The notes beneath the pieces were generated by a model, which saw only the letters and a list, made by a program, of their open reading frames with translations, had not been told where the DNA came from and did not search any database. From assembly GCA_025201805.1 (NCBI GenBank), contig MU619256.1, positions 34,911 to 98,910 on the forward strand: DNA of 64,000 bases. The letters run 5' to 3'. Positions 15,070 to 64,000 of the stretch are shown here, piece after piece. The DNA comes from Parasitella parasitica NRRL 2501 (Eukaryota; Fungi; Mucoromycota). Made by a program: the position numbers and the translations under genes. Position 1 is the stretch's first letter; each line of letters starts with the position of its first letter.

Positions 15070-18000
15070 CTAATGAACAGTGCCAAAACTTCGAATGCTA
15101 CCAGCGGTTGGTGATTGTGGGCTTCTTTTGGCCCCTCTTTTTTGTGTCTTCATGCGATTCACAAATGCGTTACCACCAGCTGCCTGTTCTCTGCACAATG
15201 GACAAGCCATATTATGTGTGGATTTCAATAACGCCGATTGATTGACTTTGCTGGTTAAGCTTCCCGGGTTGTTATCTTGTTGAAGTTGCTCAGTTGAGCC
15301 TTGATTGTTCAAGCATTGTTGATGATAAGCATGTCGACAAAAGAAAATGATTGAATTGGGTATATCTTCGACATTAATTTCATCAAAAACAGGTTCGTCA
15401 CATATATTACAGACCATATTCTCGGCTAGAAAATAACATGATGAGTGTTGATGCATAACAGGTTGAATTTCAAACTTACGATTGCAGTTGATACCACGTT
15501 TTTGAGCCTTGTACATTTTGTCTGCTAGAAACACACTATCAGTTACCAAAATTTTTTCGCAACCTTCGTGTAATGACATTTGGAGGTTATAATCTTGCAA
15601 AATCTTCAGTAAAGCGTCTTTTAAGCCAGGGATTTGCAGTTGATCCGGGATCCGTTTGATTAATCTCAATGGCTCAATATCAGTACCAACATTTTCTAAA
15701 AGTCCACGAATAAAGTCTTAGAGGAAAAATGAAAAGAAGAGTTAGTCAATATATAGCACACGTCTACAATTTCAGCTTACTGGGCTTGTCCATTGAATAT
15801 GTTAACAGATCCTCCCAAAGATCATCATCTTTTTGCTCTTTGGCAAAATCAATGGCCTAATACCAGAAAAAAAAAACAATAAGCAAAGTTTCTTTTGTAG
15901 TTGCAGGTTGTCGTTTTACCCTTTGCACATCGTCAAGTCTTTCGATAATCAACATTAATGCTTTTTTGTTATTGCCCATACGACCAAGAATAAAGACCAT
16001 CTCAGGCACCAGATCCTTTTTCTCGCAGACCTTGAACGCCTTTTCCAGCGATATGTAATGACTTGCTCGCAGGAATTCCAGCAGTTTCGGATAATCAAAT
16101 TCTGCATACAATTCAACCTGAAGATCATGGAATTCATAACCAAGTTGGTGATCACGATCAAAAAGCGCATCCAAGTAGATATGTAGAAATTGGCGATGTC
16201 GCCAGAGCTGCTTTACTACTTTTTCGGGCTATATAAAATCGCAAGGTTAGTGCTTTGGCTTGTCTGCTTGTTTGCTTATTAACAGAAAATAAAAATAAGA
16301 AAAAAAACTTACAGGAATGGCATCAGTATTCTTCACCAACAATTGAACAGCAGGCATCTTGCTAGGCTTGCTCTTGATCTCTTCTTTCTCAAGTAAATGC
16401 TGATCGAATTCCATGAGGAGCACAGCTTTGTCTTTGACTGCATCAAACATGTTGTATTCTTGAATAAGTTCAAACGCATTGGGTCTACGCAGACGAAGGT
16501 TGTATTCAATGGCCTTATCTGGTTGATTGTTGTAGGTATACCTAAGAGAAAAATGGTATTAGCGTCCTGCTGTGCGCCCTGAATGCATATTAAACCCTTA
16601 CAGATCAGCAAGGCACTCCAACAACACCTCGTTCTGTTTGTCTTTCTTCATTACATCCTCTACAGCGACAATGACGTTGGAGAGGTTATACAATGTTCGG
16701 GGCCATTTACGAATTGTATTTCTCAATGCTGCATAGTCGCTCTTCAAGAACCAGGCCAGAGCAATTTCATATACCGTGCTGCTCAATTGGGGGTCTTTGA
16801 TGGGTATATAGGGCGTAATGGCCTTCAGTTCTCCAACTTCTGTAAATTTGAATACCCAATCTTCCCAAAGCGATTGATCGTTTTTGAGGATATCGTTACA
16901 CTCCTTGGCTGCCTCGTCAAATCTTTTCTCGGCCATAAGCCAGTTGAGATAGGTTTGGCCAATTTCATCTGCATTGAATTTTTTGCTGGCAGTAGTTGCT
17001 CGTACAGCTTGCAATGCTTCACCAAATCTTTCATGCTCCAACAACCATTCAATATGATCATCTTGGTCTCGAGACCGCGCCGCAATCAAATCTTTAGGCC
17101 CCATGACATAAAACATATCTTCTTCCATCAAGAAATCAAGCACATAATCATTAGCCTGATAATGCTCAAAGCCATGGAGTGCAAGAACATCTGCAGATAT
17201 CTCTTCGTTATCTCCATTGATGATATGAAGTTCAGGTTTGGAGGCGAGCCTTCTACGCTGAAATGTTGTGTTGTCAGCATCTTTTTCCTTGTCCTCTTCT
17301 TCTAAAAGATAGGATAAAAGCATCAATGTGTCATTGAATGGCGCGATGCCACTGATAATGTAATCTGTTTGGAACATGGCTGTAATTTCTACGTAATGCG
17401 TCGGTTGTCCTTGTGTAGGGTTAACATTGGGCTTAACAACAGCCACCTTGACCGTGTCGGCCCAACCTATAAGCAATGTCGTATCGTTTTTCCAGCACAT
17501 CCTACATTTGTAGAGGTCTGCTCTTGGGCTTCCTTCAGGCCGATCAATATAAGTAATACGAATATTTGTAGCTGTATCATAAATCTTAACACCTGTATCA
17601 TTTGCCCAGGCAATGAAATTGTTTTTCCAGCGAATTGCGTATATGGGTCCTTCATTTGCATGAAGGACGATGTCTTTGTGCCCTAGCCAGCCTTTTTCGT
17701 TCATGATGAGTTGTTCTGCCATACCACCAGATACAAATTGTCGGGTTGACTTCCGAGCATAATCTGGATCCAAGGCAACTGCTTTAACAGGTCTCTTGTA
17801 ATCAAATGACTGGATCTCGGGTGTGTAAAGCGCATAAATGAGAACCTTGCCTGCAAAGAGCCAAAGGAAGTCAGAATGTGAGCGCCGTTGGGGCATGAAA
17901 AACTACAAACCATCATCAGAAGCACTGGCTACAAATTCGTCCATTTTATCGATAGAGATATCATTTACAGTGGCAGAGTGCTTTCTAAAACTCTTGATTA

Positions 18001-44481: not shown

Positions 44482-47400
44482 TCAATGCTTGTAATTAAGC
44501 CACACACTTACGCTATCAGGCCCAACAAGATCACGAATTGTAGCGATCAATAGTTCCAATTCTACAGCAAGCTGTTCAGAATTCATCAAGTAAGTGCTAA
44601 AATAGGTATATTCTCGATCTCCTAAATGCTGATATCGGAGTGCAAGTGATTTGCGAGCCTTATTAGTTAGCTCTCTTCTTGCTTTGGTAGGTCGTATAAC
44701 GTATGGAGGTAATGGCGCTTTACTTGTTAGGGCGTTGGAACCCAAGTGCAGGGTAGTTAGAAAAGAAGCAATCTATTATAGATGTTAAAGTCCGGCCAAT
44801 CTCATTCACCAATTCACACAGTTACCATTGCTTTTCTTTCCTTCCATGTGTCTCTTACAATCATCATTCGCCATTTATAGGGTATCTTTTCAAATGCAAA
44901 CTCCATTTGGAGCATTAAACTTAGGATATTGTCTAGAATTTGTAGTATGTGGAGATATTTATCTTCAGGGAATATGCCGCGCAAAGCAGGCTCAAACCGA
45001 CTTTGTTCCAGCAATACTCTTTCGCCTTTGATCTGCCTTCGGATCGACCCTGCAACAGAGCGAAACATCTTCTTGTTTGCTTCCAGTATATTGACATCTT
45101 CTACTTTGTTCTTCAATAGCAAAGCTAAAAATGAAGAGTACAATGCACCAATTTCACTCAGTGTCTGCGATATGCGATGTCGAAGGACTACTCGGCCTGT
45201 GCGGGGAAATGGAAATACACTAATGATAAGCGCCGCAAAGACACCAACCAAGACATCAACAGTTCTCTACAGATTTTTTTTTTTTTTTAGAATTCCTATG
45301 CACAAATATATGCTTGCTCGAACAATCAACTGCATTACCTCCCATGTTATCACAAAAACAGACACCGGATGTCCATTCGGTGTGTAGCTATAAGTATATC
45401 CAACGACTAAATTCATTTTTCCACAGTGTTAAATCAAGCACCAAAAAACTTGGATGGATATACATACTAAGTGATATTGTGATCATTGAAAAGAGACCAG
45501 TAGCCTTCCAGAATTTACCATTGATATAAATCATCCACCATGGAAGATTGCATATAAACGTCAGAATAATCAAACCAGGCACACTGCCTCTACTGATTTC
45601 CCATATGATCATGGCTTCTATAGCCCCAATAAAAGTACCCAAGGTTCTTGTCATTGTACTATATACCATAGGGTATGATGCAATGTCATTCAAATGTCGT
45701 ACGTATGTTAAACATAATGTAGTCTTACCCGAAAAAGTTGCTGCCCACAGACGGGCCCATCCAAATCAGGGCAACAACAACGGCCCACTGTCCACGAGCC
45801 TCGTTATACCATCTTACAGAATCCTCCAAAAAGCCAGGCAGTGATAGAAGTGCAACAACAATAGCTGCTCGGAACGAAAACGCCGCATCAGCAGTGTATA
45901 AGTATTTGACAAAGAACAGGTATACAGAGTAAAAAAACCTCTGTGTTGAAGTTGTGGGATAAGCAACATCAGGATCATGATACTCTAGGGGATCCAGCGT
46001 GTTCTGTCGCCATGGATTGGTGTTTTGGGAAGTTCGTTTCTTTTCTGAAAAATCATAAGGGTGTTGCTTATGGTGTTCTGATGGCGAGTGAGCTTGACCA
46101 CGATGAGGAGTGTCCAGTTTATACAGCACATTTTGTGCTTCAAGATCAAGATCGGGTGCGGGTGGCGGAATCGTTGCTGCTGTAATGAGTGTGGCTCTCC
46201 TCGACATGCTTCTCTGCAAAGAAGTTGGGTTGATGGTGTCAGCCATGGAATTAGGCGAGTCAATTGCGTCTTCAGTAGCATGTCCTTCAAAAAACCACTT
46301 TTTAAGCGGTATATGAGGCATCCAAAACCGGCGTTTGGTTCGAATCTGGTCCAATTCATAGATAAGCGAGGTCAACGTGTAGATATTTTCTGCATACGAA
46401 TGCAAATTGAACTGAAACGTCAGCAACAGAAACAGAATTCGTCGTGGCACACCTGATTTTGTGTACAGTCGCTCCAATCCCACTAGTCGGTGCTTGTGAA
46501 ATCTTGCAATCGCTGCAAATAGAGGCACAGAAGGGTCGTGCATACGGCTGTACTCGTTGGCCAGTGCTTCTTCTGATGCTTGTTTAGCACCTACCTTCCA
46601 CTGATAATACCATTTGTAAAAAAAAGGTCTGTCTTGATATCTTGGATCCAAGTTTTGCATCCGCCGTAATCTTTTAACCGATTCCTGTACTGCAAGCGAG
46701 CATGCGTCTGTTAATTCGAGGTAGGTTGGCTTTACAATGTCCAAAACGTCATCGTAATCCTGTCGCCAGTAGCTCATTACTTTCATATGATCATTCCAGC
46801 GAATTTTTCTTCTGCGCGGCATTGCCGTATTGTCGCTCACTAATGAGGTTGTTGATGTATTTGCTGTCGATGGGGATTGCGAAGCTGAATACGTAGAAGC
46901 ATCGTCGTCTGTTGTGGCGGCGGAATTGTCGTTAGAGCTGTCCTCTTCTTCGTCGTCTGTGCCACCATAATAGCTTCGAGGTCGAGCAAATGGAGGAGGC
47001 AAATTCTGCGCTTCTTCATCTGTTGCTAGTGGATCATCTTCTCCCTCGTGATTCGGTGTCTCTAAAGGTGCAGCTTCAAATAAGCTCTTTTCTGCTTGAC
47101 GCATATTCGCTTCCATAGCTCTGCTAAGGCCAAGGCCTTGCAAGGGAACCCTCAGTTTTTTTATCAGTGAAGTCATTTCGCTGACATCAGTCGGCGCGAT
47201 GGCATTAAACGAAGGCTCCCTCCTTACCATGCGTTTTTTTTGGATCAAATTTGTAATTAAGGCGTCCACAGTTTGATGGATTGTGGCTAATGACTCGGCT
47301 TGATCTGCTGACGTGCTAGGGCCACGATTCACTCGAATAAAGGCGACTATCTGATGCTGAACAATGCCGTCAAATGACTCGAACACCTTGATTAAATCTT

Positions 47401-47531
47401 GCACGAATACTCGAGTGCTGTTTTCAGGAAACACCACAAGGAATATTGTAAAAATAAGCAGGAACCCAACAAGGGTGGGCACCAAGACTTGCAACTACAT
47501 ACATGACAGTTGCATTATTATTCTTTCTGGC

Positions 47532-47568
<37 letters not shown>

Positions 47569-48180
47569 GAAACTTACAGTGGTGGTAGCAGTGAATTCTG
47601 TATGCATTACTGCCGAAGTCAAACTAATAACCATGATCGAAGCCGACAGCATTCCACCCACATTAGCTTGTTCCACCCTGACTCGAAACATACTAAGAAA
47701 AAAGCAGCCAATTACCAGAAAGCAGGACAGAATAGCACACACTTTGGGCTGGGCCAATGTGGGATCATTAGGGTTTCTGACAAGCGATGCAAGAAAGGTG
47801 CCCAAAATTGCCCATGATCCAGAGATGCAGCACATTACAGTGCCCAACAGAATATCCTCGGCCAGAAATCCATATGATTTAGCCGGATGCACAAACTCCA
47901 CAGCAACAGAGGCTAATATGCCACCAGTTGACGACACACTACGAACAGGATCGATCAATAACATGGCTAGTGCAATCGTTACAGCAATGTTTGCTTTCAA
48001 AATTTTAACACAAATGGGCCAGGTCAAAGATTGCCATATTCCTATAATTCGCTGTCGAATGGTTTGAAGAGGAATCAAATGACCTGAAGTCGCTGAAAGT
48101 CGAAACTTTTGAGTCTTGTCCCTTGGTTTCCTGTCTTTTCTCCTGCTCAACTTTTTTCTTGATTTCTTTACTTTTGCCAT
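44482..48180 (-). CDS. FUSC/aromatic-acid-exporter-like (ArAE_2, BRE4-like) membrane protein; multi-exon
   Basis: N-terminal TM block (KILKANIAVTIALAMLL, FVHPAKSYG), long soluble loop, C-terminal FUSC block (FSFRAAIVVALLSLPGFL, RGQWAVVVALIWMGPSVG, RTLGTFIGA, FPFPRTGRVVLR, EPALRGIFP). Confidence 0.8.
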
Positions 48181-48227
48181 GATCGAATAGTGAAGAGATC
48201 GTCCAAGGTAGAAATGTTAACTAGAAG

Positions 48228-48267
48228 ACTGAGAAACTGAGAACTGAGAGACTGAGAAACTGAAGAA
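48228..48267. repeat. Imperfect (ACTGAGA[A/G])x5 tandem repeat just upstream of the FUSC-like gene
   Basis: actgagaa actgaga actgagag actgagaa actgaaga read directly. Confidence 0.8.
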
Positions 48268-48654
48268 ACAAGAAGAAAAAAAACGAAGAGGGTTTCAGTT
48301 TTATAAACAGAAATCGGGTAAGCCGGACATGCCTTTTTTTTGACATGAAAGCGAATACGCTAATGCGAGTTGCAAGGAAAAGTGATACTCCGTATACGCA
48401 AATGCAGTATTACAAATAAACTCATAATTGCATCCGATAACAACGGGAATTTTATTACCTCTGTTCTGTATAGGGTTCTTTGCTACCGAGATATTTATTA
48501 AAGAAAAGAAAAAAGCTTGAAAAAAAGAAAATAAATGCTTTGGAGGATTCTATTCAATATGATGAGAGACGATTAACAGTAATGGGCGGGTTTGTCGTTG
48601 TATTTGTGGAGATTTGTGGGTTGTGAAATTTGAGTGTAGTGCGTACAAAAGTGT

Positions 48655-50024
48655 TTATGGTTTTCCATGATCCTTGACCGCATCAGCGTTGCTTTGACTA
48701 GAAGAGGACATGGGGATGATATCTTTGTTGTTTGCTGGCGATTTATTGGACACAGTCTTGGCAACCGAGTAGACTAAACCAGCTATAAAGCCTAATAAAA
48801 GTAGTGTGTTGATATAATTTCAAATCGTATCTGCGCAAAACACTTACCAACAACAATAGCTGTAACATTACCAAAGGTAGCTGGATCGCCAAAGAACATG
48901 ATACCCGACGCAGCAATTGGAAGCTTATTTAGTGCCCCCACCATGGAATAGGTTGTAGATGAAGTGGTACGAACACACCAAGCAGACGCATAAGACATGG
49001 CAAAAGCAGAAGCGCCAGAAAATATCATGGCAATAAGCATAGCTTGACGCACATCAGGAGGACTAAATTAAATTAGTACACTCGTAGCACTTCAACTAAC
49101 CCCGTTATGATATACTTACAAATTCTTGCTCAAACTTTCAGCGCTCCAATCTTCAAAGATGAAACTGGGAATAATCAAAAGAGGGATCGAGAGGAGGTTG
49201 TTGTAGTAAACAGTGTCGAAATCTTTGAAATTGGTGAGCTTGATTCTTTTCCGCATGTAAAGCACAAATGCTGCAGAAGCAAGACAATTCGTAGCCATCC
49301 AAAAATAGCCCAAAAATGTTGTATCAAGATCAGCAATCTGAGTCAAGGTATCGTTGATGTCTGCCCAGCCAGCAATAACCGAAGAAAAAACCTAGTGTAT
49401 TTTTTTTTGCTCGTAAACACATCTAGAACAAAACTCTAAACACATGCACACCCACAAATACTTACCATCAAGCCAAATGAAATCAACATCATGTGAGTGA
49501 CGCTTCCACCAAACCAGAGCACCTCGCCATAGGCAATAAGAATAATAGTTAGATTCTTAAAGATAGTATATATAGGAATACGGAGGAATTGAAGCGCCTT
49601 TGAGCCCGTGTAAATCATAGCAACCAGTGAGGCAGCAATAGGCATCCATTTACGAGCTTCATCTTTTTCAAAATCACGGAACTTGATAAGGTTGAGAAAC
49701 TTGAATGACTGCAGTAATAAAACTGTAACCAAATTCTGCGATACAACATAAATACGTCTGGACGTCTGTATATAAAGCAGCAAGACTTACCTGTATGGTT
49801 AGCAGCAGGAAATTCATGTTGAAATCGTATCCACTAAGCACGTATTTATTTGTCACAGTCATCAAAATCGAAGCACCACAGTAGCTGGCGATGGGAAGAA
49901 TTGCTCTCATGCCAGGAGATAGCTTGAAGCCAGAGGGTGCGACTACTGTGTTTTGTTGCTGGCTTTGTTTATTCTCTGGTTCTTGGTCAATGACCACTGT
50001 ATAATCTGGCTTGCCTTCCCCCAT
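48655..50024 (-). CDS. VRG4: Golgi GDP-mannose transporter; multi-exon
   Basis: [89 protein letters not shown] (GALNK motif). Confidence 0.95.
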
Positions 50025-51382
50025 GTTTTTCAATTTTTATTCCAGAAATGAGAAAGAGAGAGAAGAAGAGACTTGAAAACCTTGAGTCAAACAACCCAAA
50101 AAATTCTTTTTTAGTGTAATCGGAGTCGCATCCACTGTGATGGGCAACAGGCAGAAGTTGTAATGTTTTTAATCCTTGGGTGGATGACGATCATCATCTT
50201 CCCCTTTAACCTCCCAGCCTTTTTTCTTTGGGTCTCCTTTATCGCTCTTTCTAGGCCAACACAAAAAAAGAAAGACCTATACAGATCAACATACCATGAG
50301 TGACCAGATCGGAGACAAGCGACTCGAATTACAAATATAAAAAAGAAGAGGCGATCTTTTTCTTTGTGCCACCTCCCAATTAAAGCTTGCCAAAGATTTA
50401 AAAGTGAAGATCACTTGGCCAAGCAGCATTTTAATTGACATTTTAAAGTCTGGACAATAACGAGTGTATATCTCCTTGTTTATGTGCGTGTATTTGCTCA
50501 TTTTATCAAATATCATACATTTAAACTAATTAATTGAACTATTCAAGCATACAATGTCTTGTAAGATTGTCATGCAACCGTATGTGCACTTGTAGAGCCA
50601 AACAAAAATCTTTATCATATGTTTTTATGTGTAGATGTACAGAGCATGCAATCCAAAAAACATGCGGTTACTGATGATCTCGAAGCTGGTTTCTCAAATA
50701 GTTTTGCGCCATTTGTTTTTTAAATGTCAGTGTTTGGTATTAGCACACAAATGGTTTCATTTCAACTTTTTGAGCAAAAAGAAGCTACTGATGTAGAGCA
50801 TAATTTATTTCACCACTTGCCGAGTGCATGGTAATTGCGCTCCGTTTTGATTTTCCTTGCATATTGATTTACTTTTTATTGTGAAGGCGATAGACCCTGT
50901 ATACCGCGCATCTTGTGTTTGTATTTTCAACAAATTAGATCATTTTATATTACCCACTTGTCGTCTTTGTATAGAATAAATGCTGCTCTGCTTAAAATTG
51001 TAATCAAATGTATTGATGTCAAGAGGAGGATAACAGCTGTCATGCGCATCTTTCAAAATTGTGCATTGAGGACAAGACAAGAGGGGTGCTCAGTTCTATG
51101 AATTATGGGCACTGATTTTAAATATGCATCTGGTTTATTTTTATATCCATGTGGGTATCTTTGCTGACAGATTGATCTTATGTTACATGGATCAACGACA
51201 AATATTACATATTAAAATCAAACGAGATTATACAATAAATTATACTCCATTTATCCGGGTCTTGCATTGCACATTCTTTTTCATATTTTGCATATAATTA
51301 ATGCTTTTTTTTCAAACGAAAAAAGAAAGCTATAACCCTATCTGACCGGCTTACCAAAAACAATATCTTCCCAAGAAGACAC

Positions 51383-51900
51383 TTATTGTTTATTAGCCTT
51401 TTCGGCAAGCAACATAAAGTTGCTCTCAATGCTTTCCATTATCCTCAACTTTTTTTCGTCTTCTTCCCAATCCAGTTCCACGAACGAAGATGATGAGTTT
51501 GTGTTGGCGATGTTTCTCTCTTCTGATATAAGAAAATCCTCTTTGTAGCAGATCTTTGAAGTAGCTGGCTTCGCCAAACATGTCGTATTGTCTTTCTCTG
51601 CAGTTTTTATCATCAATTGGATGGCTTCAAAGCTCCTAGTAACCATTCTCTGTAGAAAAATAACCACTTGCTAGTACGGTATATTATAAATGAATTAAAC
51701 AAATATTTTTTACTTACAACCAAAGAAATGACGGCGATCAAGCACTCAGCGATCTCAGCACCATTGCTTTCGGCTAGAGGAATTGCTTCTCTTTGAGGCA
51801 TGCAGGGATTATAATTCCATTTACAAGCCTAACACCCATTATTCGCAAACTATCTGAACTAGCCCAGTTTTCAAACGTTGACCGGAAGTGCATGTAGAAA
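51383..51900 (-). pseudogene. Probable fragment of a multicopy hypothetical gene
   Basis: Two short ORFs joined by a GT-AG intron (AEIAECLIAVISLV|RMVTRSFEAIQLMIK...); upstream coding-like sequence (FENWASSDSLRIMGVRLVNG) is out of frame. Confidence 0.35.
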
Positions 51901-53826
51901 GGAATGTTGCGGCCGTGTTAAATGGTTGTGTTAACGAATGAGTTTTGCAATTTGTTGCTGAATTAATTGGAGAAAGGCAGACCGAGTGAGAAAATTGGTT
52001 GATGTTTAGAAGGTCAAATGATGATTTTTTTTTTTACTATTTTACCATGTAAGCACGATATAATGGGGTTGATGAATAAATCTATTCATCTTTTGATTCA
52101 TATCAGAGCTCGAATTATGCTTTTTTGAGTTGATATTTATTCATCACATCACATCACACACTCCTCCTTAGCATGTTGATTAGGTACTTAATCTGCTTAA
52201 AAGGAAAAACTACACTGCTTAAATAAAAAGCTATCAACTTACGAGATAGCTTACGATAACATAGTCAATTGACTTTTAGGTCAATGTTGAAATCTGTGCC
52301 ACAGAAATAGCTGCTTAGCATATCATTATTTAAGAATAATAGCAAAACATTGTTTCAACCCTAAACTGTTAAAGAGGGTGTGTTATTTTATTATTCACTG
52401 TGCAATTTTTTAATTCTCATATAACAGATATTCAAAAAAGTTATCAATGTATATCGTTCATAGAGAAGAGAGAGAGAGGTCATAGTGGAAGGACTCATTC
52501 AGAATGTGCCACCATGATAAAATCAACATTGTAAAAAAGGCACAGCAGATGAGTGATATGATAAAAAAAAGGAGGACGTGAGGGAAATAATAAAGACTAT
52601 TAACTTACCAGATATACAACTAAGGATTTTCATTGATTGATAGAAGTTATCTATTTATATTGACCAAATCTACAGGAATCGATCTATGAATATTAACAGA
52701 TCATGTCTGACATTTAGTAGACATTCAATAGTAATTATCAGATTATCAGACATTTGGTTATAACTCTTGCTAAATGAACCCTAGAGCCAAGATCGAACTT
52801 GCAAAAAACAGCTAGTACTATCTAATAAAAATATTTTTATCCATGAAAAAGTCGATACATACAAAGTAATCAGCAGGAAACAGCGATTTTCATACGAGTA
52901 TTGCATATAACTGTTTTAAGCCTGATTAAACAGGCATGATCAAGACTGCCGTATTCGAGCATTATTTGATTTCCACTAGGCGATGTGTATATTAAAAGTT
53001 ATGCACAATAGTAGTTTTGTTTTTATAGTTGCAAAGAATTGCTCATAAATTCTGCTTTAGGAACCGTAGAATTGAGTTTGCACCTGGACTTCATAGCGAA
53101 AGATCAATGATTTCTGATTGGAACATTTGTATTGAATAAAAAACGCAAAGATGTTTTGCCAGGTCTTGAAATAGGCACAGCAGATGATTGTGTATTCAAA
53201 ACTCCTTAATATGATCAGGTAGTTATTTTACAATCTCAGGGCTCAAAATCCTTTGTGCTGGAAGCTGATCGTAGAGAACGAGCCTTGAATATTGTGGACC
53301 TGTTTCGAATAACCAACCTAGTTCATCCAGAGATGTCCCAATCATGTTCTCGGTACTAGATTTAGCAGAGACTGAGTCGCTCATCTTCAAAAATTGGGAT
53401 AGACTGTACAGACAAGAAGATATATTAGACAACTCTCAAAATTCGAAATCAATGGAAAAGAATAATACAGAGTTACACACCGCAAAGTCCCTCTACCTTC
53501 CTTTGCAAATTAGTTATTGTATTGGTAGTAGCGCAAAGCATATACTGCATATAGATTGAGAGTAATTCAACATTTGCCTATGTAGATATATACATGCAGA
53601 ATTAATTAATTAACAAAATAATACCACTAGCATTTTAGCATATCATTATATGCTACGTTTCACAGGTCCAAACATACATATATTGCAACACTTTTCTTCT
53701 TTAGTTTCTACTGTAACAGTGTTATTTAATGAATGAAATGAAACAAATTTTCTTTTCTTCTTTGCACCCATACATACTTTAATCTCTTTCCCTTCCTTTC
53801 TATCCTTACAACATCATTCAATCATT

Positions 53827-55418
53827 ATGAAATTGGTCAGCTGTTTCGTTTATGCAGCCATTATTTTTTCTTTAAACTCGGAAGCAGCAAAAAGTGACTC
53901 TAAACTACTAAGAATACCTATTAGACACAGAGATGTCTTCTCTGCAACCAGCAGAAAAAGAGCTATTAATGATATTTCTTTGTACAATGCAAATGGAAAA
54001 GAGTACTTGATTGAGATTGGCATTGGATCGCCTCCTCAGTTCTTCAACGTCACCTTAGATACAGGAAGGTATGTTTGCGTGTGTCGGGTATATATAACTT
54101 ATATGCATCAAACAATTAAGTGATTTTAACGCATAATAGTGCTGATTGCTGGGTTCCTGTTCAGTCATGTCCTACTTCCATGTGTCCCCATGCTCGTTTC
54201 AATTACCAAAAATCGAGCTCGTTCAAAGCCTTACCTCAGCAACTTGACATTAACTATGGTCTCGGCTCTGCAAAGGGCTCGTATGGTTCAGATACTTTGA
54301 CATTAGGTTCTGTGGATGGTGTGTCGTTGTCAAATTTCACTGTGGGATTGGTATCAAACACCAACAACATCTTGATGATATCTCAAACAGAGGAGGACGC
54401 ACCGTCCAACGGCATTTTTGGTTTAGGTTATCCTAATCTTAGCTTAAAGACAGGAGATAAGCCCGGCCATTTTGTTATGGGCTTGTACCAAGTCAAGGCC
54501 ATCAGCGAGCCTATTTTTTCTATCTTCTTGAATGCTCAATCTGCCTATGGAAACACCGGAGAGATGCTTCTAGGCGGTATTGATAAAAGTAGATACACTG
54601 GCCAGCTGCAGTATGCTCCTATTGTCAGTTACGATGTATCTACTTTTATGGTAACACCCAATTTGGGAACTAACATGACTAATAAAGAAGCAAATAGCCG
54701 GGAATCATATCTTTACTGGGCGGTACCTGGCCAGGGAGTTGAAACCTCCAGTGGCTACAAACATGAGAGCAAGACGCTGCAAGGATACATTCTGGACACG
54801 GGCACAACATTGACATATGTACCTCGATCTGTGGCTAAATCCATCGTCATGTCTGTTACGCAAAATGCGAAAACGACACAACTAGATGCAATTGATGATG
54901 TCTTTCGGGTCAGCTGCTCAACAGCCAAGCTAGAAGGCGCTGTCTCCTTTTTAGTGTCGCCTTCTCCAACAACTGCATCCACTAGTCCAATCTCAATTCG
55001 AGTTCCAATTTCTGATTTGGTCATACCACTGGATGATGCGCGCACAGCCGATTCTTCTAAATCATGCATGTTTGGTATTGCACCATCTCCAGCAGGATTG
55101 GATTTAACATCGGGAGAAACATGGATTTTGGGTGAGTCCACGCTGCGGTCACTCTATACTGTATTTGATTTGAAAGAGAATCGAATTGGGCTAGCCAAGT
55201 TAGCCAGCAGTGGGGGAGGATATAATAGCAACACAACTGCTCATGGAAGAAGCAATAATAGCAGCAGCAGCATTGCCGCCAATGAGTCCAATTCCAAGTC
55301 TAAGTCTGCGCCTTCTGCTGCATCATCAGCAGCAGCGTCAGCGTCAATTCTCATTTGCTCTTTATTACCTGCAATCTCTATGATGATGCTAGTCATTGTG
55401 ATGTGTTTCATATTGTGA
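53827..55418 (+). CDS. Secreted A1 (pepsin-like) aspartic protease, probably GPI/membrane-anchored; intron 54069-54139
   Basis: Signal peptide, RKR propeptide end, EYLIEIGIGSPPQ, DTGS and DTGT catalytic motifs, Ser-rich linker plus hydrophobic C-terminus. Confidence 0.93.
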
Positions 55419-55649
55419 TACTTCTTAATTCGGCGGATAAAAAAACATGAATGCACCTAGTTTTCATGACGTTTTCCCCCACCAGGCTTCTCTTCCCCCA
55501 ATGGTGAAGCCTTTTTCGATGTGGTTTTTGTCTCGGGACTAGAATCGGTGTATATTGAAAATTATAGAAAATGATAAAATGCAATAAAATAATCCCTCGT
55601 TCATCTATTCTGTTTGTTTGTTTGTTTCTCTCTCGCAACAAAGCAGAAA

Positions 55650-57194
55650 ATGAAAATTACCTTTGCAATTCTGGCTCTGGCGGCAGTCGTTAATGCGGAA
55701 GCAGCATCAGCAGCACCAGAAGACGGAATTCTTCGCTCAACAATTATCAAAAACCCTCGTCAGTCAAATCCATTACAGGTCGCACGAAGACGATACCAAC
55801 TCCTCAACAAGCGAAATTTCGATAAAAGAGACCCGTTCAATGCCGCCTTGTACAATGACCAAGGCTCTCAGTATCTCATTGAAGTTGGCATCGGAACTCC
55901 CCCTCAGCATTTCGCTGTGACTCTGGATACTGGTAGTGCAGACCTTTGGGTGCCTTCCACCAAATGCCCTACTAGCTCATGCCCGTTCTACCGATTTGAC
56001 ACTTCAAATTCATCGACATTCAAGGCTCTCGACAAGCCCTTTGGCATCCAATACGGCATTGGAAGCGTCAATGGCACCTACGCAACGGATACGGTCTCAG
56101 TTGGCGGTGCATCCATCCCGAATCAGCAGTTTGGTCTTGCTTCAATAACCCAGGACATTATGCAACCTAATCCCTCGGCTGGTGGTGTAGGTTCCAACAC
56201 GCCAGAGCCATTCAATACATCGAGCTCAAACACTGTGGAGGCAAACGGCATTCTGGGCCTCGGCTTTCCTTCATTAACGCAAGCTAACAGTCAAGGCGAA
56301 GGGGCTTACAATCCATTTGTCTTTAATCTGGCCTCGCAAAACGTCATCAAGGAGCCCATTTTTTCCATCTTTCTAAACAGCATCTCAGAGCCGAATTGGT
56401 CCGGTGAGATCATCTTTGGCGGCATTGATCAAACAAAGTTCGAGGGCGAATTAACCTATCTGCCCGTTGCCAGCTTGACAGCCAGGTCTTCATCAGGGAG
56501 TTCTTCTTCATCTAGTAGTCGCAATGCTGGCTACTACTACTGGATGGTGTATGGTCAAGGTTTGGGTGTCAAGAACTCTAATACTGGGTCTAACCCAAGT
56601 TGGAGATTGCGTGAAGTCGGCGCATTTATCTTGGACACTGGTACCACATTAACGTATCTACCAACCTCGGTTGCCACTGACATTGTTACTGCGTTTGCTG
56701 GTGAGGACAACTACGCTTTGGATCGTCAATCGGGCGTCTTTATCGTCGACTGCGCTACTGCCAAGAGCCCTGCCGTTTTCCAGCTGCAAATGTCTCAATC
56801 GAGCTCAGCCAGCGACAGTCCTTTGACGCTTAGCGTGCCTGCTTCGGAACTGGTTATCCCTATCGACGGAACGTCTGCTGATAATGCACGGGTATGTATG
56901 TTTGGCATTGCTCCTTTGGGAGGCGCAGGAGGTATCGGATCAAATATGTACCTTGTTGGTGATTCTGTACTGCGCTCTGCCTACATGGTGTTTGATATGG
57001 GCCAAAATCGTATTGGTCTTGCGGCAAATAAGAACATTGGCGGTTCCATCACAGTTGGTAATGGCACAGCCAATTCTTCTCCTGGTGCCTCGAGCACTGA
57101 AAGCTCTTCTGGTGGTGATCAATCTATGAAGTCTTCCATTGCAATCACTGTTGGTGCTTTAGTGATTACTTCGCTTATTATGGCTGCCCATTAG
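55650..57194 (+). CDS. Secreted A1 aspartic protease, probably GPI-anchored; intronless
   Basis: MKITFAILALAAVVNA signal; KR sites; LDTGSADLWVPS and ILDTGTTLTY; VGDSVLRSAYMVFD; Ser/Gly linker plus hydrophobic tail. Confidence 0.95.
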   Translation: MKITFAILALAAVVNAEAASAAPEDGILRSTIIKNPRQSNPLQVARRRYQLLNKRNFDKRDPFNAALYNDQGSQYLIEVGIGTPPQHFAVTLDTGSADLWVPSTKCPTSSCPFYRFDTSNSSTFKALDKPFGIQYGIGSVNGTYATDTVSVGGASIPNQQFGLASITQDIMQPNPSAGGVGSNTPEPFNTSSSNTVEANGILGLGFPSLTQANSQGEGAYNPFVFNLASQNVIKEPIFSIFLNSISEPNWSGEIIFGGIDQTKFEGELTYLPVASLTARSSSGSSSSSSSRNAGYYYWMVYGQGLGVKNSNTGSNPSWRLREVGAFILDTGTTLTYLPTSVATDIVTAFAGEDNYALDRQSGVFIVDCATAKSPAVFQLQMSQSSSASDSPLTLSVPASELVIPIDGTSADNARVCMFGIAPLGGAGGIGSNMYLVGDSVLRSAYMVFDMGQNRIGLAANKNIGGSITVGNGTANSSPGASSTESSSGGDQSMKSSIAITVGALVITSLIMAAH

Positions 57195-58251
57195 GCAAAA
57201 AATCTTGTATTATACATGTCGGTGTGAATGGCTGCATAAACAACGACTAATCTTTCTTTCGTGTAATATCTGCTACCTTTGTAATTAACACCCTATTCAA
57301 ATATATAAAATGTAAAATGAAATAATAAAACTCATAACAAACAAAAATCAACCTACGTTCCGAAAACGAAGATAGCTATAGCATGTCATGATAAAAATAT
57401 AGACGTATAGATATTACTGTATGTAGTAGAAACCCAGGCATAAAACATTAGCTGGCCATAAACAGGCAAACCTTTCATCTGACTTTATATTGTTTATAAG
57501 CTCAGGAATTCGATTTGAATAGAGAATATATCTACATAAAAACTTCTTGTACGGTATGTTGTTACTTACTACACTCAAATTTCTTGTCTTTTGCATGGCT
57601 ATTGTGTTTGTTGAGAGTGTCATCTTTAGGGAAGCGAGGAGTAATATGTGGAATAGAATTCCACTATTTCAAAAAGCTTTTCAAATAAATGATGTCCTAT
57701 TTTATTATTGCTTTATCGCTTTGATTTTAATTTTTTGTTCTGCTGAAAGGATCGACCGAATAAAAAGTAACGTAATGTTTTGCTAATGATGTATTTAGCC
57801 ACTGTACACAGAGGAAAATTGATTTTAGAACGACAATATATGTATACATTAAGGTATCGCTATTTTTGCCGTCCTATACATTTGCAAGTGGTAGCAGACT
57901 ATAATCGCAATGGATAATTGTCTAGTTAAACCTTCGGACCATGTATACTTCTGAACTATAGCAATACAATATTATGCTGAAACATCAGCTATCTCGTAAA
58001 TTTGGGAGGAAATGACCTCATTGTCATTGATTCACTTGGACTAAACGGGGGTCTCAACATCGCACGTGCAATAAGCAAACTTGCTTGATACCTAAAAGCA
58101 ACCGAGAAAAACATCACTTAATGAGATCACTTACTTATTTGTGATCTCATAACTTTAATCGAGGGGTTTGACTTTTCATCTCACGAATATGCATTAAAAC
58201 CTATACGAAAGTGTTTTTAGATGATATTGACTTTGTATGCACTGTTCCACG

Positions 58252-59520
58252 ATGATTAAAATTGTGATTCTATTCATCTATCTGTTTATTGTTACTCCAG
58301 CGCAGACTAATGGAAAAACCATATCTTTACCAATAGAAAAAAAGTATCATTATTATCAAGAAAAAATACAAAGGAGAGCACCTACACATAATATCCAGTT
58401 GTATAACAATGAAGGAGCCGAATATCTAATCAGTATTGGTATCGGAACACCCGTACAGAACTTTACTGTTTCTGTAGACACCGGAAGGTAGCATATAACA
58501 GCATGATATTTATTCATGCATTGACATTTGCCTATTTACACATCTAGCTCTGACCTATGGGTACCTAGCATTTCTTGTTCTGAACAAGAATGTCCATATA
58601 ATCGATTTGATCCTTCAAAATCCTCTACGTTTTCAACTGTCAACGATACACCCTCTTTTTACATTGCGTATGGTATTGGATCAGTAAATGGCACGTTTGC
58701 AAAAGATAGTGTACATTTAGGAGACGCATACCTTTCTCAGCAAATATTTGGCATGGCCTCATCAACAAAAGATTTAATATTCATGTCGAGTTCGCCTTCC
58801 AATGGCATTCTGGGACTAGGCTATCCTGCTTTGACTACCGGAGATACCAAGTATGATCCATTTGTTTTCCGACTGCAAAAGGAAGGCCTCATTGAAAAGC
58901 CTGTGTTTTCCATAAGCATGGGTTCTGTGAATGATCACGGCTGGGTAGGTGAGATTTTATTAGGTGGTAAAAATCCAGAAAAATACGTGGGAGACATAGC
59001 ATACGAGCCTGTATGGGGCGATAATATATATTGGATGGTTGCTGGAAAGTCGATTCAAGTCGTCAAGGAGACGACGCAAAGTGAGGTTATTCTCAATGAT
59101 ACATTTGAATCTGTACGAGGCTTAATTATTGATACTGGTACTACCTTGACATATATGGACCATGTCCTTGCGGATGAGATTGTCCGCATGGTGGCGGATA
59201 AAGTTGTATTCGATCAAGCGTCAGGAACCTATATAATTGATTGTGGGGTCAAAGGAGACGCAACCACTGATTATTTTCTGGAATTTATCATGCAGAAAAC
59301 AAAAATTTCCATTCCTATTCAGGATCTTATTTTACCCCTAGGAGGGGAAGAAGGCCAACAAGGTGGTCTCTGCATGTTTGGTATCGCACCATGGATGACC
59401 ACAGGCACAAGCCAGAAAATGAATGAAAAGGGTTGGATATTGATCGGTGACTCTGTACTGAGATCTACCTACTTGGTGTTTGATATGAGAGATCATCGGA
59501 TCGGGTTTGCCAAAGTATAA
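58252..59520 (+). CDS. Secreted A1 aspartic protease without C-terminal anchor; intron 58488-58547 (alternative ATG at 58237)
   Basis: Signal peptide; EYLISIGIGTPVQNF, VDTGSSDLWVPS, IIDTGTTLTY, IGDSVLRSTYLVFD; ends at RIGFAKV. Confidence 0.93.
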
Positions 59521-59949
59521 ACCTTAAAAGCTTGATGAAATGCGTGCCACAAACACTCATTCATGTTATTTTAGACTTCTATACGTGACACCAAAAAGGC
59601 ATCATTGTCCTCCATCGGTAGTGGCACTCAATCTCCGAACATGTGTTTGCATAAACTAAAGGTTATCTTTAGTGTAGCACTTGCAGCCACATTAATTCTT
59701 TAGTTATTAAATGGTCTGTGCAATTTTGGATAGCTTATTATGCATGTATTATAAAATTCTAAAAAAAAAAAAAGTCGTCGGATTGATTCATGATAACTGT
59801 TTATATAATGAGGATGTATCGATCCTTTTTCAACGAGTGAATATGATGCAGTTTCTGATGTTGAAACAGAGAGGCAACAATACAATTCGGCGTAAGCAAA
59901 ACAGAGTTTTACAGTTAGACTATCAGAATGGCTGCTTTGACATCTACGT

Positions 59950-60530
59950 GCCGTCTTTCGTCTTTTCTGCTTATTCTTTTTTGCATTCTTCCTTTTATTT
60001 TTTTGGGCCGTTGATGAAGATGTTGACAGCATTCTCAATTTACACCATCTTAGTCTTGCATCTTGGAAGCCATAAGAATTAGACAGTGTTTGGAAATGCT
60101 GTAACATATATTATATGTATAATATATGTAGTATGTAACGTTGTATGCTTGCAGCCTTTAATCTTCTCTTCCGATCTTGCACTAGTTTTTGCCAATTAAC
60201 ATTCCCACTCATATCACAGTATTCAGCGGATGATAAGCGTCTTTAAAATGTAGTAGTTGACAAACAGTTGTACTACTAACACAACCTTCTGCAAGAAAAT
60301 AGACTTTTTCAAGAGCGTTATTAAACAAATGTTTGTCTGGTGCTCATATGAACGATTTAAGAGGCGATGATACTGCGTATCTTTCTTATAGAGCATCAAC
60401 GTTTTGTTCGATCAACTCAGGCAAAGTGAAAAATTGTAGCTGATGCACTGCTTGCTTCTGGCCGAAGAGTGCCCACTCACACCACACAATTTACATAGAG
60501 CTTCCTAGGTTACAGGTACTGCATTGCGTA

Positions 60531-60580
<50 letters not shown>

Positions 60581-60727
60581 TTTTTTTCTTCGACATGTCT
60601 CTGCGCTTGATGTCTTCTAAAAGTGTAAGTTTTTCTGCTTCATTTAATAACTTACATTACTTCTTTTTAATAGGCTGTCTGTTTGAGATATCGGACCCTG
60701 TGGCCGTTTCTTCTTGCTATTTCTCAT
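59950..60727 (-). pseudogene. Fanzor1-like nuclease relic, N-terminal and middle portions (internally deleted)
   Basis: CKLCGVSGHSSARSKQC (60495-60445), ERYAVSSPLKSF, FLQKVVLVVQLFVNYYILK (to 60241), RLSSAEYCDMSG, LQHFQTLSNSYGFQDARLRW, IENAVNIFINGPK, then a K/R-rich stretch; order matches Mucorales Fanzor1-type proteins as I recall them; stops and frameshifts present. Confidence 0.6.
60534..60577. repeat. Poly(T)44 homopolymer
   Basis: 44 consecutive T, inside the 5' part of the Fanzor-like relic. Confidence 0.95.
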
Positions 60728-60809
60728 ACTTCTGTTGTTTTTTTTAATTAAAGCTTCAATATTTGGATAAATCGGTATATACATATTTGATTAATCAATT
60801 CAAATAAAA

Positions 60810-61216
60810 TTATATTCAGAGGGGAAAGACAAAAAAAAACACCTTGTAAGGCTTTTAAAGAATTTACAGACATCTTAATTTATATTATGCATCAAAAACT
60901 CTGGTATGGACGGTGTCATATACTATAATGAACTCAACAGAAATCTCTAAAATCATAGCTGATCGCTTTTTTAGGCTTAAGGGACGCATCTATTGTTCTT
61001 TATTGTGCATTTTTTTTATTTTCTATTTCACACATTGTAGACATCAGTGTACAATGCAAAGTTTATGACTTGATTCAGCAGCGTCGAAGACTCCACCCTC
61101 ACTTCCAATGGTACCATCTGTTCAATCCAGTGGAACCGAGGCGTGAATAGCTGTAACAACATGGCAAAAACATCTATGGCTTTTTGGAATGGTCATAAAC
61201 GTCCTCTATTTTTTAA
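60810..61216 (+). pseudogene. Fanzor1/TnpB-like relic, C-terminal RuvC-II / zinc-finger / RuvC-III portion
   Basis: RIYRHLNL (60859-60882), NELN..ISK (~60927-60951), QCKVYDL...RRLHPHFQ[C, 1-nt frameshift]TICSIQWNRGVNSCNNMAKTSMAFWNGHKRPLFFK, matching the TnpB/Fanzor CxxC-x3-WNRD-x-N-A-x-x-N signature with D changed to G. Confidence 0.65.
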
Positions 61217-62395
61217 AACTAAGGAGAATTGCTTAGAGAACACGGAAAAGTTTTGTAAATGCATATGTAAAGTTCTTTATAGGTAAGCCTACACCTACAA
61301 CGCATAATTTCCAACATAATTTCCTTATTTGATTTATTCCAAAAAAGGTAAGCAAATCGTCTAAACTTAAGATTTGATTTGCCCAGAAAAAACCAAGATC
61401 GTCTGAATTCGAAATAATAGTTCCTGAATCAGGGTAGATCGTTTTAAACGATTGCAGATATAAAGATCAATATTTTACAATAAAATCTCGATATATTTTT
61501 TTTCCGCTATTTCGGTTACTTAAGCCCCTATTAAATACATCAACTTTAATAGGTCTCAACAATTATATTCAGCATTGATAATCAGTAACCGAAACTTTTT
61601 CACAAAGTTTGGTAATACGAAGTATTAATATTCTGGATCCATCAATTGGATTCCTTGCATATTTTTCTTGGATTTAAATCAATCTTTTTCGATAGTATTT
61701 AATAAAGGTAAGTCAGATAGAATAAAGTATGATTTATCGTCATGGTGACATTTCGAATATTTTTCATCCTGATTGTCAAAATATAATTGGAGTAACTTTA
61801 TGTATATGTTTTTGATTTCGTATAAAAAATTATCAGAAATGAGGAAGTGTTTGGGATTATAGGAATCAATCGTATATCGTATATAGAACTCGTTTTTTGA
61901 TCGTTTACACGTTTTTGTAGTTATATGCCAGTTTTTGCGTTCTACTGAATTTTCCATAAAAATCTACCGTATATAGGGCAGTTTTTAGTTTAATGTTGTG
62001 CATAGCTTTAATACAAAATGTTTTGTTGCACAAACCTATGATGAGGCGCATCATAAACCAAGTACTACCATGTACCCCCTTCCTGTATTCTTTATCATCT
62101 ATTAATAATATAAAATAGAGCGGGGAATATATGAAAAAAGTATGATCCCTGGAATAATAACATCATAATGATTGAACATATCTAACATGTATGGAAAAAG
62201 TCATCAACAAGAATTAAGTTTGGTCATCAATGGCAAATCTTACCTTTTGCTACTAATTGAGTCTATTGATTGTTCATCTCCGCGCATCATTCAAATGGCC
62301 ATTGGTTCATTTCAGTTTTCAAATGGTTTATTTTTGGTATTTTTCATTTTTCTTTTTCTCCTTTTTTTTTTTTTTTTTTTTTTCTTTATATTATA

Positions 62396-62965
62396 ATGGA
62401 CATTGTAAATCAGCAACAACAGCATCATTATGAAAATACAAAAGAAATGTTAATGAAACGATTAGCAGATGCTAGCCAATATAAGATATACCCATCGATT
62501 ATTCCAAGAAATGAGTTACCTTTAAGAAAGATTTTACTCACCACGAGGTAACAAGCTACGATAATAATAATAATTCCCACACAATGACTTAAACTACAAC
62601 ACTCTAGGTTGTGGAATCATGTACGTAGACAGCAAGCCATGCTAGCCATGTCATCAACACCAGATGAATGGCTATTCGAGCAAGAAATTAGTAATGAAAT
62701 TATACCCGCTAAAGAAGAAGAGAAACAAATGGAAGAAATACAAGACAAAATAGAAAATTATAGCCGCAAAAGAAGAATTGAGGACGAGCCTGAACAGTTA
62801 CAAATAAAAAAACCAAAATCATCATCAAACACCAACAACTTGCACCAACATTTCATCGACTCCCCGGCTTCACCGGCTGGCCCGGCTTCTCTATCATCTA
62901 CTGCACCCTCTTCTTTACCTCCTCCAACAACGAGCAATAGCCCTGCAGTCCTGTTGAGCGCATGA
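62396..62965 (+). CDS. Small hypothetical protein; intron ~62548-62607
   Basis: MDIVNQQQQ...ELPLRKILLTTR|LWNHVRRQQ...; frame-preserving GT-AG intron; basic NLS-like RKRR...KKPK; AATAAA after the stop. Confidence 0.65.
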
Positions 62966-63327
62966 AAATACTGAATAAAAAAATCTCGTATATATTTTTA
63001 AACATATACTTACTCGCTACGTTATTAAGAAAAAAACTGGTTGAAATAAAATAAAAAATATATAAATACCACAAAGTCTTGTAAATAAAGCCTATAAATA
63101 GCTTTTAATGGCGGATAAATAAAGAGAATATAGTGATGCATAGAATTATAGTTGTAAATGATCTGTTTCGCCCATCAATTAAATTAATAGAGATTCATCT
63201 ATACATCAGTATAGCTTATGTAAGTAATAATTGTACAACATGTATAACAGGGACATACTTATAAAAGAAGACATTTTGGTATTGATACTTTCTTTATCTT
63301 TTTTTTTCCTCTTTAAAATAATCAATC

Positions 63328-63636
63328 ATGGTTAAATATATACAAGTTCTGACCTTCTTGGCTGTAGTCACTCAGGCTTCTCTCGGTCAATTACTGGCAC
63401 CCAATGCTTCCAATAACTGTACGGCCGAGCTCTGGGAATTGTGCGATCAATTCTTGTTGAATGGAGGTCTGCAGTGCCATCGTAACGCCCAAATCATTTG
63501 CCATCATGAAAATCAAGAAATGAATGATAAAGAATATTGTGCACAAAATGCAACTTACAGTTGCCGAACGTTCAGATCAAGATATGGCTATACCTGCAAT
63601 TCCACCTCTTGCGTATTGTCGAAAAATCTCATATAA
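63328..63636 (+). CDS. Small secreted cysteine-rich protein (102 aa, 8 Cys)
   Basis: TATAAAA ~65 nt upstream; signal peptide; Cys spacing C7C10C7C12C7C10C4C; four N-x-S/T sequons. Confidence 0.75.
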   Translation: MVKYIQVLTFLAVVTQASLGQLLAPNASNNCTAELWELCDQFLLNGGLQCHRNAQIICHHENQEMNDKEYCAQNATYSCRTFRSRYGYTCNSTSCVLSKNLI

Positions 63637-64000
63637 TTTTTTAGTAGCATGAAAATAGGACCCTTCATTTGACCCTTTTTTTTTTTTTTTCTTTATTGAA
63701 AAATTATTCTCCCTCCCCTCCCCCCAAACGCTCACATTGCAAGTGCAATAAACAAATAAATAAGACTTATCTGACCCCATTAAGCCGAGGACATGCCCGA
63801 GGACTCCTGCTTAAAAGTGTCCCGATGACAATAAATAACTCCTACAAATAAGGCTATTTAATTGGCCATGATCCATCTTTACTGTCCTGAGTGTGTTTGT
63901 TGTGAGTGTTTGTTTAATTTTTGGCATTTTGTGATTCAAAGTATACATTTCACATTCAAGCTATTAGATATAAGACAAACCTTTGAGTAAGACATCCTTG

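Follow-up and report, generated by a model that had tools for sequence, protein, structure and literature searches.

What lies in the apparently empty intergenic DNA of Parasitella parasitica that, when translated, yields fragments resembling Fanzor1, the eukaryotic TnpB-like RNA-guided nuclease? Fanzor1 was reported in 2013 in Mucor circinelloides (10 families), Rhizopus and Phycomyces, including copies carried in Mariner-type elements with terminal inverted repeats (TIRs); elements that carry Fanzor1 alone and have Mariner TIRs and TA duplications are also on record (PMC3627910). The structure of PpFz1, a Mucorales Fanzor1 of P. parasitica, has been solved (PMC11423790). We analysed the locus in the window, by which we mean the whole 64-kb stretch of DNA under study (C20:34911-98910), and against the genome (32.8 Mb, 450 contigs). 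Our data indicate that positions 59921 to ~61426, a longer span than the 59950-61216 outlined in a first-pass annotation, are very probably what is left, in rearranged form, of a long-dead DNA transposon that carried Fanzor1 and had Tc1/mariner-like ends (TA/CAGT...), a relic without present function.

The profile and tblastn searches proposed in the first-pass annotation were run, and they returned significant Fanzor1 matches that bear out its naming of the stretch as a Fanzor1 relic. As the reference we used P0001, a 720-aa Mucor flavus Fanzor1 that carries PF07282. It matches the solved structure of Spizellomyces punctatus Fanzor1 (SpuFz1; 8gkh, E 1e-6), and the reference family is therefore Fanzor1. 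In a tblastn search of window 57001-63000, P0001 aa 20-147 matched the minus strand at 60639-60241 (E 1.8e-5) and aa 681-717 matched the plus strand at 61119-61229 (E 7.9e-6; 41% over 37 aa). Between these, aa 487-560 gave a weak match to the minus strand at 60239-60045 (E 1.7) and aa 571-583 were aligned at 60036-59998 on the same strand; this middle part (aa 487-583) is the stretch that aligns with SpuFz1. The control query, reversed P0001, reached a best E of 0.2. We also made an HMM from 11 Mucorales Fanzor1 proteins and searched it against the 4101 six-frame pieces that make up the whole window. The top three of these pieces were the knuckle, C-terminal and FVNYY pieces of the relic, all within 1.1 kb and at the correct profile positions (85-108 and 148-171 for the N-terminal part), with marginal individual E-values of 0.02-0.09. 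A whole-genome search with P0001 aa 596-720 recovered the C-terminal piece (C20:96029-96139, E 0.006). A genome search with PF07282 gave 41 matches, none of them at the relic (C20:94.6-96.4 kb), because its zinc ribbon is too decayed. That AT-rich intergenic DNA should resemble Fanzor motifs by chance, with a CCHC knuckle taken from a retroelement Gag, is scarcely credible and was rejected: single HMM E-values are marginal and such knuckles are frequent in Gag proteins, but the window's three best HMM matches cluster as described, tblastn E-values of 1e-5 to 1e-6 stand against 0.2 for the reversed query, the knuckle and FVNYY have the order and spacing seen in intact Fanzor N-termini of the genome, and a matching transposon TIR follows the C-terminal piece.

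The relic consists of two pieces, A and B, on opposite strands. Its features, some of which are delimited by homology to a paralogue on contig C9, are as follows:

60650-59921, minus strand: piece A, the 5' two thirds of a Fanzor gene (P0001 aa 1-147, then aa 487-583)
60241-60650, minus strand: Fanzor N-terminal part, P0001 aa ~1/20-147 (tblastn E 1.8e-5, HMM)
60239-60241, minus strand: deletion junction, with adjacent HSPs (aa 147 ends at 60241, aa 487 begins at 60239)
59998-60239, minus strand: Fanzor middle part, P0001 aa 487-583 (RLSSAEYCDMSGN..., YMLQHFQTLSNSYGFQDARLRW, IENAVNIFING)
59921-59997, minus strand: lysine-rich linker and end of the detectable relic (C9 homology ends at 59921)
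60651-60854, no strand: spacer between the opposite pieces, conserved with C9 only
~60855-61426, plus strand: piece B, the right end of an element, with the last ~100 Fanzor codons, the 3' subterminal region and the TIR
60855-60951, plus strand: probable RuvC-II-region remnant, P0001 ~aa 622-653 (KLFRTL...IDEFKTSK), read as IYRHL...NELN/EISK with a frameshift
61116-61229, plus strand: Fanzor C-terminal tail, P0001 aa 681-717 (tblastn E 7.9e-6; matches Fanzor C-termini of the genome)
61230-61334, plus strand: 3' untranslated subterminal region, from the stop codon to the TIR
61335-61426, plus strand: Tc1/mariner-like TIR, homologous to other Fanzor element ends

Piece A begins with an N-terminal part that has a K-rich, NLS-like stretch, a CCHC knuckle (CKLCGVSGH...C, 60495-60445) and an LFVNYY motif (60270-60241); the knuckle and FVNYY are also present in the visible N-parts of intact genome copies. 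At 60528-60585, the lysine-rich (AAA/AAG) coding stretch has grown into poly(T/A), with a run of 46 nt, and the C9 counterpart of this run (C9:16057-16157) includes a 10-N assembly gap (16057-16066). At 60239/60241, P0001 aa 148-486 (~340 codons) are missing by tblastn, which agrees with the internal deletion that had been proposed between NYYILK and RLSSAEY. The deleted interval includes the RuvC-I sequence LDPGRTS, and with it the catalytic Asp of the LDPG motif. The middle part is homologous at the DNA level to C9 17523-17761, a stretch that itself matches P0001 aa 536-586 (E 1.9e-5). In the linker beyond it, we discounted a tblastn match of KTARRCQSSHSDSLTV to the zinc finger (E 3) as fortuitous, since in the alignment with C9 KTARRCQSSHSDSLTV falls in the K-rich linker. 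Piece A is without the last third of the gene and without a transposon end of its own. The spacer on its other side (60651-60854) has no protein match and is presumably the upstream DNA of piece A.

Piece B begins with 60855-60951, probably a remnant, containing a frameshift, of the region before and at RuvC-II. This segment has no significant score of its own and is colinear with the tail by eye; its IY..L is common to element A of C9 (KIYQQL...GEYKTSK), and its NE.N..K to an arm of a derivative on contig C48 (VAVNEYNTLK). The RuvC-II Glu and the [TS][TS] motif (IDEFKTSK) would correspond to NELN/EISK at 60927-60951, a reading that requires a frameshift and carries no significant score. In the tail, RuvC-III reads WNRGVN, so that RG replaces RD and the catalytic Asp has become Gly; the codon, 61140-61142, is where the mutation had been placed before. 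In the zinc finger, the final CxxC has been disrupted (GTIC).

Downstream of the stop codon, the relic continues as the end of a transposon. Positions 61275-61416 align to the right end of the element on C77 (L028 5231-5370), 70 bp further inward than they do to its left end, and the subterminal DNA is conserved with C9 up to 61315. In live Fanzors the omegaRNA scaffold lies in the 3' subterminal region of the element, and by analogy 61230-61334 would occupy the equivalent position. At 78-81% identity, the TIR (61335-61426) resembles the termini of Fanzor elements on C77, C22 and C16 and both termini of one on C44; it also matches the end of the element on C46. For positions 61318-61409, the C77 counterpart lies just downstream of a Fanzor C-terminus, and the C44 counterparts flank a fragment on both sides in inverted orientation. 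Complete elements have TIRs of 56-120 nt and termini of the form TA/CAGT...ACTG/TA. The outer terminus of the relic, at ~61426, is CCTG/AA, a decayed form of ACTG/TA; the other end is missing and no target-site duplication is readable. An inverted-repeat search found no second TIR in window 57000-63000.

The first-pass annotation had listed its peptides as one ordered series and had read them as a single dead gene. By exact six-frame search we located all but one of these peptides, at the following positions:

60495-60469, minus strand: CKLCGVSGH knuckle
60270-60241, minus strand: QLFVNYYILK
60233-60219, minus strand: SSAEY
60104-60045, minus strand: LQHFQTLSNSYGFQDARLRW
60039-60007, minus strand: IENAVNIFING
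60862-60876, plus strand: IYRHL
60927-60938, plus strand: NELN, then EISK at 60940-60951 in a different frame
61116-61163, plus strand: ICSIQWNRGVNSCNNM
61185-61205, plus strand: WNGHKRP

The exception, 'CTIC', is GTIC in the DNA (aat ggt acc atc tgt). Taken singly, SSAEY, NELN/EISK and IYRHL do not score significantly, and their placement rests on colinearity and on the C9 copy. The series does not run along one strand: the minus strand carries five of the peptides and the plus strand four. We therefore consider it very unlikely that the span holds a single colinear, internally deleted Fanzor gene read through on one strand, and this model was rejected on the strand assignments. The fragments are all Fanzor-derived and jointly cover the N-terminus, the middle and the C-terminus in protein order, as the model would have it, but aa 1-583 run along the minus strand (60650 down to 59998) and aa ~622-717 along the plus strand (60855 up to 61229), and C9 has an antisense C-terminal piece in addition to its own sense C-terminus.

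Stops and frameshifts interrupt all reading frames, the longest open stretches being 62-70 aa, and of the four catalytic or zinc motifs three have been lost or mutated, so the earlier view that the copy is dead holds for the rearranged relic. RNA evidence came from one spliced (RNA-like) run, X1, available as contigs, in which rare transcripts can be missed and silence is weak negative evidence; no X1 contig lies over 59606-61481, save a 40-nt piece that belongs to another copy. This piece is part of a 166-nt X1 contig that matches the knuckle region at 60449-60488, and because its overhang (CCATACAATTAACATACAGC...) fits C9, the C9 relic may be transcribed. An Rfam scan of the relic gave no family match. 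Two convergent genes flank the relic, their 3' ends towards it, and spliced X1 contigs cover both (GT..AG and CT..AC introns). One, on the plus strand at 58400-59520, is a pepsin-like aspartic protease gene, named from its ORF translation; its ORF ends at 59520, and a spliced X1 contig confirms that it has a 60-nt intron (58486-58545, GT..AG). The other is a minus-strand spliced gene at 61771-62333 with introns at 61964-62035 and 62182-62243 (CT..AC on the plus strand) and its 3' end toward the relic.

The right end of the relic, that is the tail and TIR, is its better preserved part, as might be expected of a domesticated or still useful remnant that gives rise, for example, to a regulatory or omegaRNA-like transcript. 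The lack of X1 contigs from this copy and of an Rfam match, the stops in all frames, the divergence of 18-24% from the sole paralogue and the location between the 3' ends of convergent genes all speak against such a role, and we regard it as most improbable.

How the two pieces came to lie on opposite strands is best approached through the paralogue. The genome-wide DNA comparison that had been proposed earlier was fruitful in part: it found one DNA paralogue, on C9, and TIR-bearing ends of other elements. C9 15305-17761 is homologous to window 59921-61315, with 76% identity by one scoring scheme and 82% over piece B by another. Window 60408-61315 and C9 16270-15305 form one continuous alignment across the A/B junction, which indicates that the A/B arrangement predates the duplication. 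C9 retains ~1 kb that the window has lost at 60239/60241, with HMM matches at profile positions 352-390, and it has further HMM matches at profile positions 579-610 and 617-682. It also keeps its own sense C-terminus, with P0001 aa 601-653 and 694-707 aligned (homology spans aa 601-707). The C9 copy is without the outer TIR. Leaving the relic aside, the ORFs of window 46000-64000 have no match in C9:1-29999; over about 15 kb no flanking ORFs are shared, and the two copies are thus not in a recognisable duplicated block.

Two further features of C9 were observed. A 185-bp segment, C9:16299-16483 (Fanzor aa ~85-147), is inverted relative to both the window copy and protein order, and is either a local inversion or a misassembly. 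In addition, the C-terminus of element A is followed by a TIR core of 26 nt (C9:18283-18308; 96% identity to window 61368-61393); it is oriented as a left end, the reverse of what is expected, and fits no model proposed here. It may belong to a third nested element.

Pieces A and B face away from each other, ~200 bp apart. A single inversion was rejected as the cause, because C9 holds two C-termini. Most likely, the right end of an element was duplicated in inverted orientation and took the place of its left end. We favour this origin because right-end inverted duplications are found in derivatives on C48 and C44, and because piece B and element A of C9 share IY..L and WNGH. The C48 derivative (C48:115098-116307) is a perfect inverted repeat of two Fanzor right ends, with 408-nt arms, 100% complementary, around a 394-nt spacer; each arm contains ...NEYNTLK..., WDRGMNANKNMA and the element end, and its RuvC-III has RG. 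The C44 derivative (C44:71039-72143) is a 1.1-kb palindrome with 124-nt TIR arms (88%); its left arm region encloses a C-terminal fragment in antisense, and a sense fragment of aa 598-720 precedes the right arm. Like these palindromic (foldback/MITE-like) derivatives, the relic has an outward-facing right end, made up of the last Fanzor codons and the TIR, that is inverted with respect to the rest. The RG change and an 'NMA' signature are shared with the C48 derivative and occur only there, in the window and in piece B of C9; other subfamilies in the genome keep RD. Unlike C48 and C44, the window and C9 join the inverted right end to a Fanzor N-terminus and not to a second right end, and a DNA comparison of piece B with the C48 arm found nothing significant.

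The A/B junction was in place before the duplication that put a second copy on C9 amid unrelated flanks. The C20 and C9 copies share the junction but no recognisable duplicated block, from which we infer that the composite, with two outward-facing TIRs, moved as one non-autonomous unit. Each copy would then have decayed independently at its site: in the window, 1 kb was deleted and the 3' part cut off, and on C9 the outer TIR was lost and the 185-bp inversion arose.

The main alternative is that two independent Fanzor elements were inserted or truncated head to head, one contributing its 3' end on the plus strand and the other its 5' part on the minus strand, and were later duplicated together. 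Transposable elements often nest, and two further observations are consistent with this account and count against an inverted duplication. Piece B and the tail of piece A in C9 have no detectable DNA similarity, sharing only the short signatures IY..L and WNGH. Moreover, among the Fanzor C- and N-terminal matches, at no other locus of the genome does an antisense C-terminus immediately precede a sense N-terminus, and no other copy has a long inverted terminal duplication joined to an N-terminus; for the same reason, we rejected a long-TIR subfamily as a general rule. However, no left TIR of piece A was found between 60650 and 60855, the shared signatures are absent from other subfamilies, and the inverted duplication of right ends recurs in the genome, on C48 and C44. 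We consider two independent insertions a tenable but less likely explanation than the inverted duplication.

The relic belongs to a large family. The genome contains at least 83 Fanzor C-terminal and 24 N-terminal matches, and, as had been anticipated, some copies appear intact (on C45, C46, C188, C8, C21, C4, C64 and C155), among them those at C21:249.8-252.1 kb and C8:394.4-396.9 kb. The interiors of these copies are N runs of 1.3-3.4 kb; their 'open frames' of 650-1190 aa are partly an artefact of translating N, and our comparison with the long copies covers their visible N- and C-parts, with Mucor flavus proteins used for the middle. The visible N-parts have the CCHC knuckle (CSKCKQRGHRSARSPLC) followed by AKLFVNYYVLE, and the C-parts have IDEFKTSK, CNLC...CCHHC and a terminal WQRDINASNNM. 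A protein search with the visible N-part retrieved 720-aa Mucor flavus proteins, annotated with a Cas12f1-like TNB domain, at 93-96% identity, and the visible N- and C-parts of the apparently intact copies are 93-97% identical to Mucor flavus PF07282 proteins. The closest proteins are 'Cas12f1-like TNB domain' proteins of Mucor flavus, Parasitella and Mucor plumbeus.

The relic derives from the same TnpB-like type as the Mucorales Fanzor1 proteins (the MCi, ROr and PBl families, Bao & Jurka 2013, PMC3627910; PpFz1, PMC11423790). In these, the C-terminal half has the order RuvC-I D, [TS][TS], C4 zinc finger, RD, and the carrier is a TIR transposon without a transposase. In contrast, the relic has RuvC-I deleted, the zinc finger broken, RG for RD, its frames shattered, the 3' third of one piece lost and its pieces opposed. 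The present family also resembles Fanzor1-only Mariner-type elements such as PUl-4 (PMC3627910), with TA/CAGT...ACTG/TA ends, TIRs of 56-120 bp and no transposase gene inside, whereas the relic retains a single decayed terminus (~61426, CCTG/AA) and no readable target-site duplication. The RuvC and zinc-ribbon core is the same as in bacterial TnpB of IS200/IS605 and IS607, and in both cases the 3' end of the element encodes the guide RNA. Fanzor1 differs from bacterial TnpB in that it forms a eukaryotic clade and has introns, a K-rich stretch and CCHC knuckle at the N-terminus, and a carrier with cut-and-paste TIRs in place of TnpA-type ends.

The relic is thus an ordinary fossil of a kind already known, the Mucor family having been described in 2013, and it adds one fossil to the more than 80 Fanzor-derived stretches in this genome. 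It does illustrate that a badly decayed gene for an RNA-guided nuclease can be detected by reading sequence alone, and a worked map of its deletion, dead RuvC-III, TIR end and old paralogue can aid the masking of relics in gene annotation. The only point of mild interest is that right ends of Fanzor elements have repeatedly been duplicated in inverted orientation. A broader proposition, improbable on present evidence, is that Fanzor1 elements in this lineage repeatedly yield derivatives in which the left end is replaced by an inverted right end (C48, C44 and the C20/C9 ancestor), and that such double-right-end units would still be mobilisable in trans and could in principle emit guide RNAs into both flanks, the right end being where the omegaRNA is encoded in live Fanzors.
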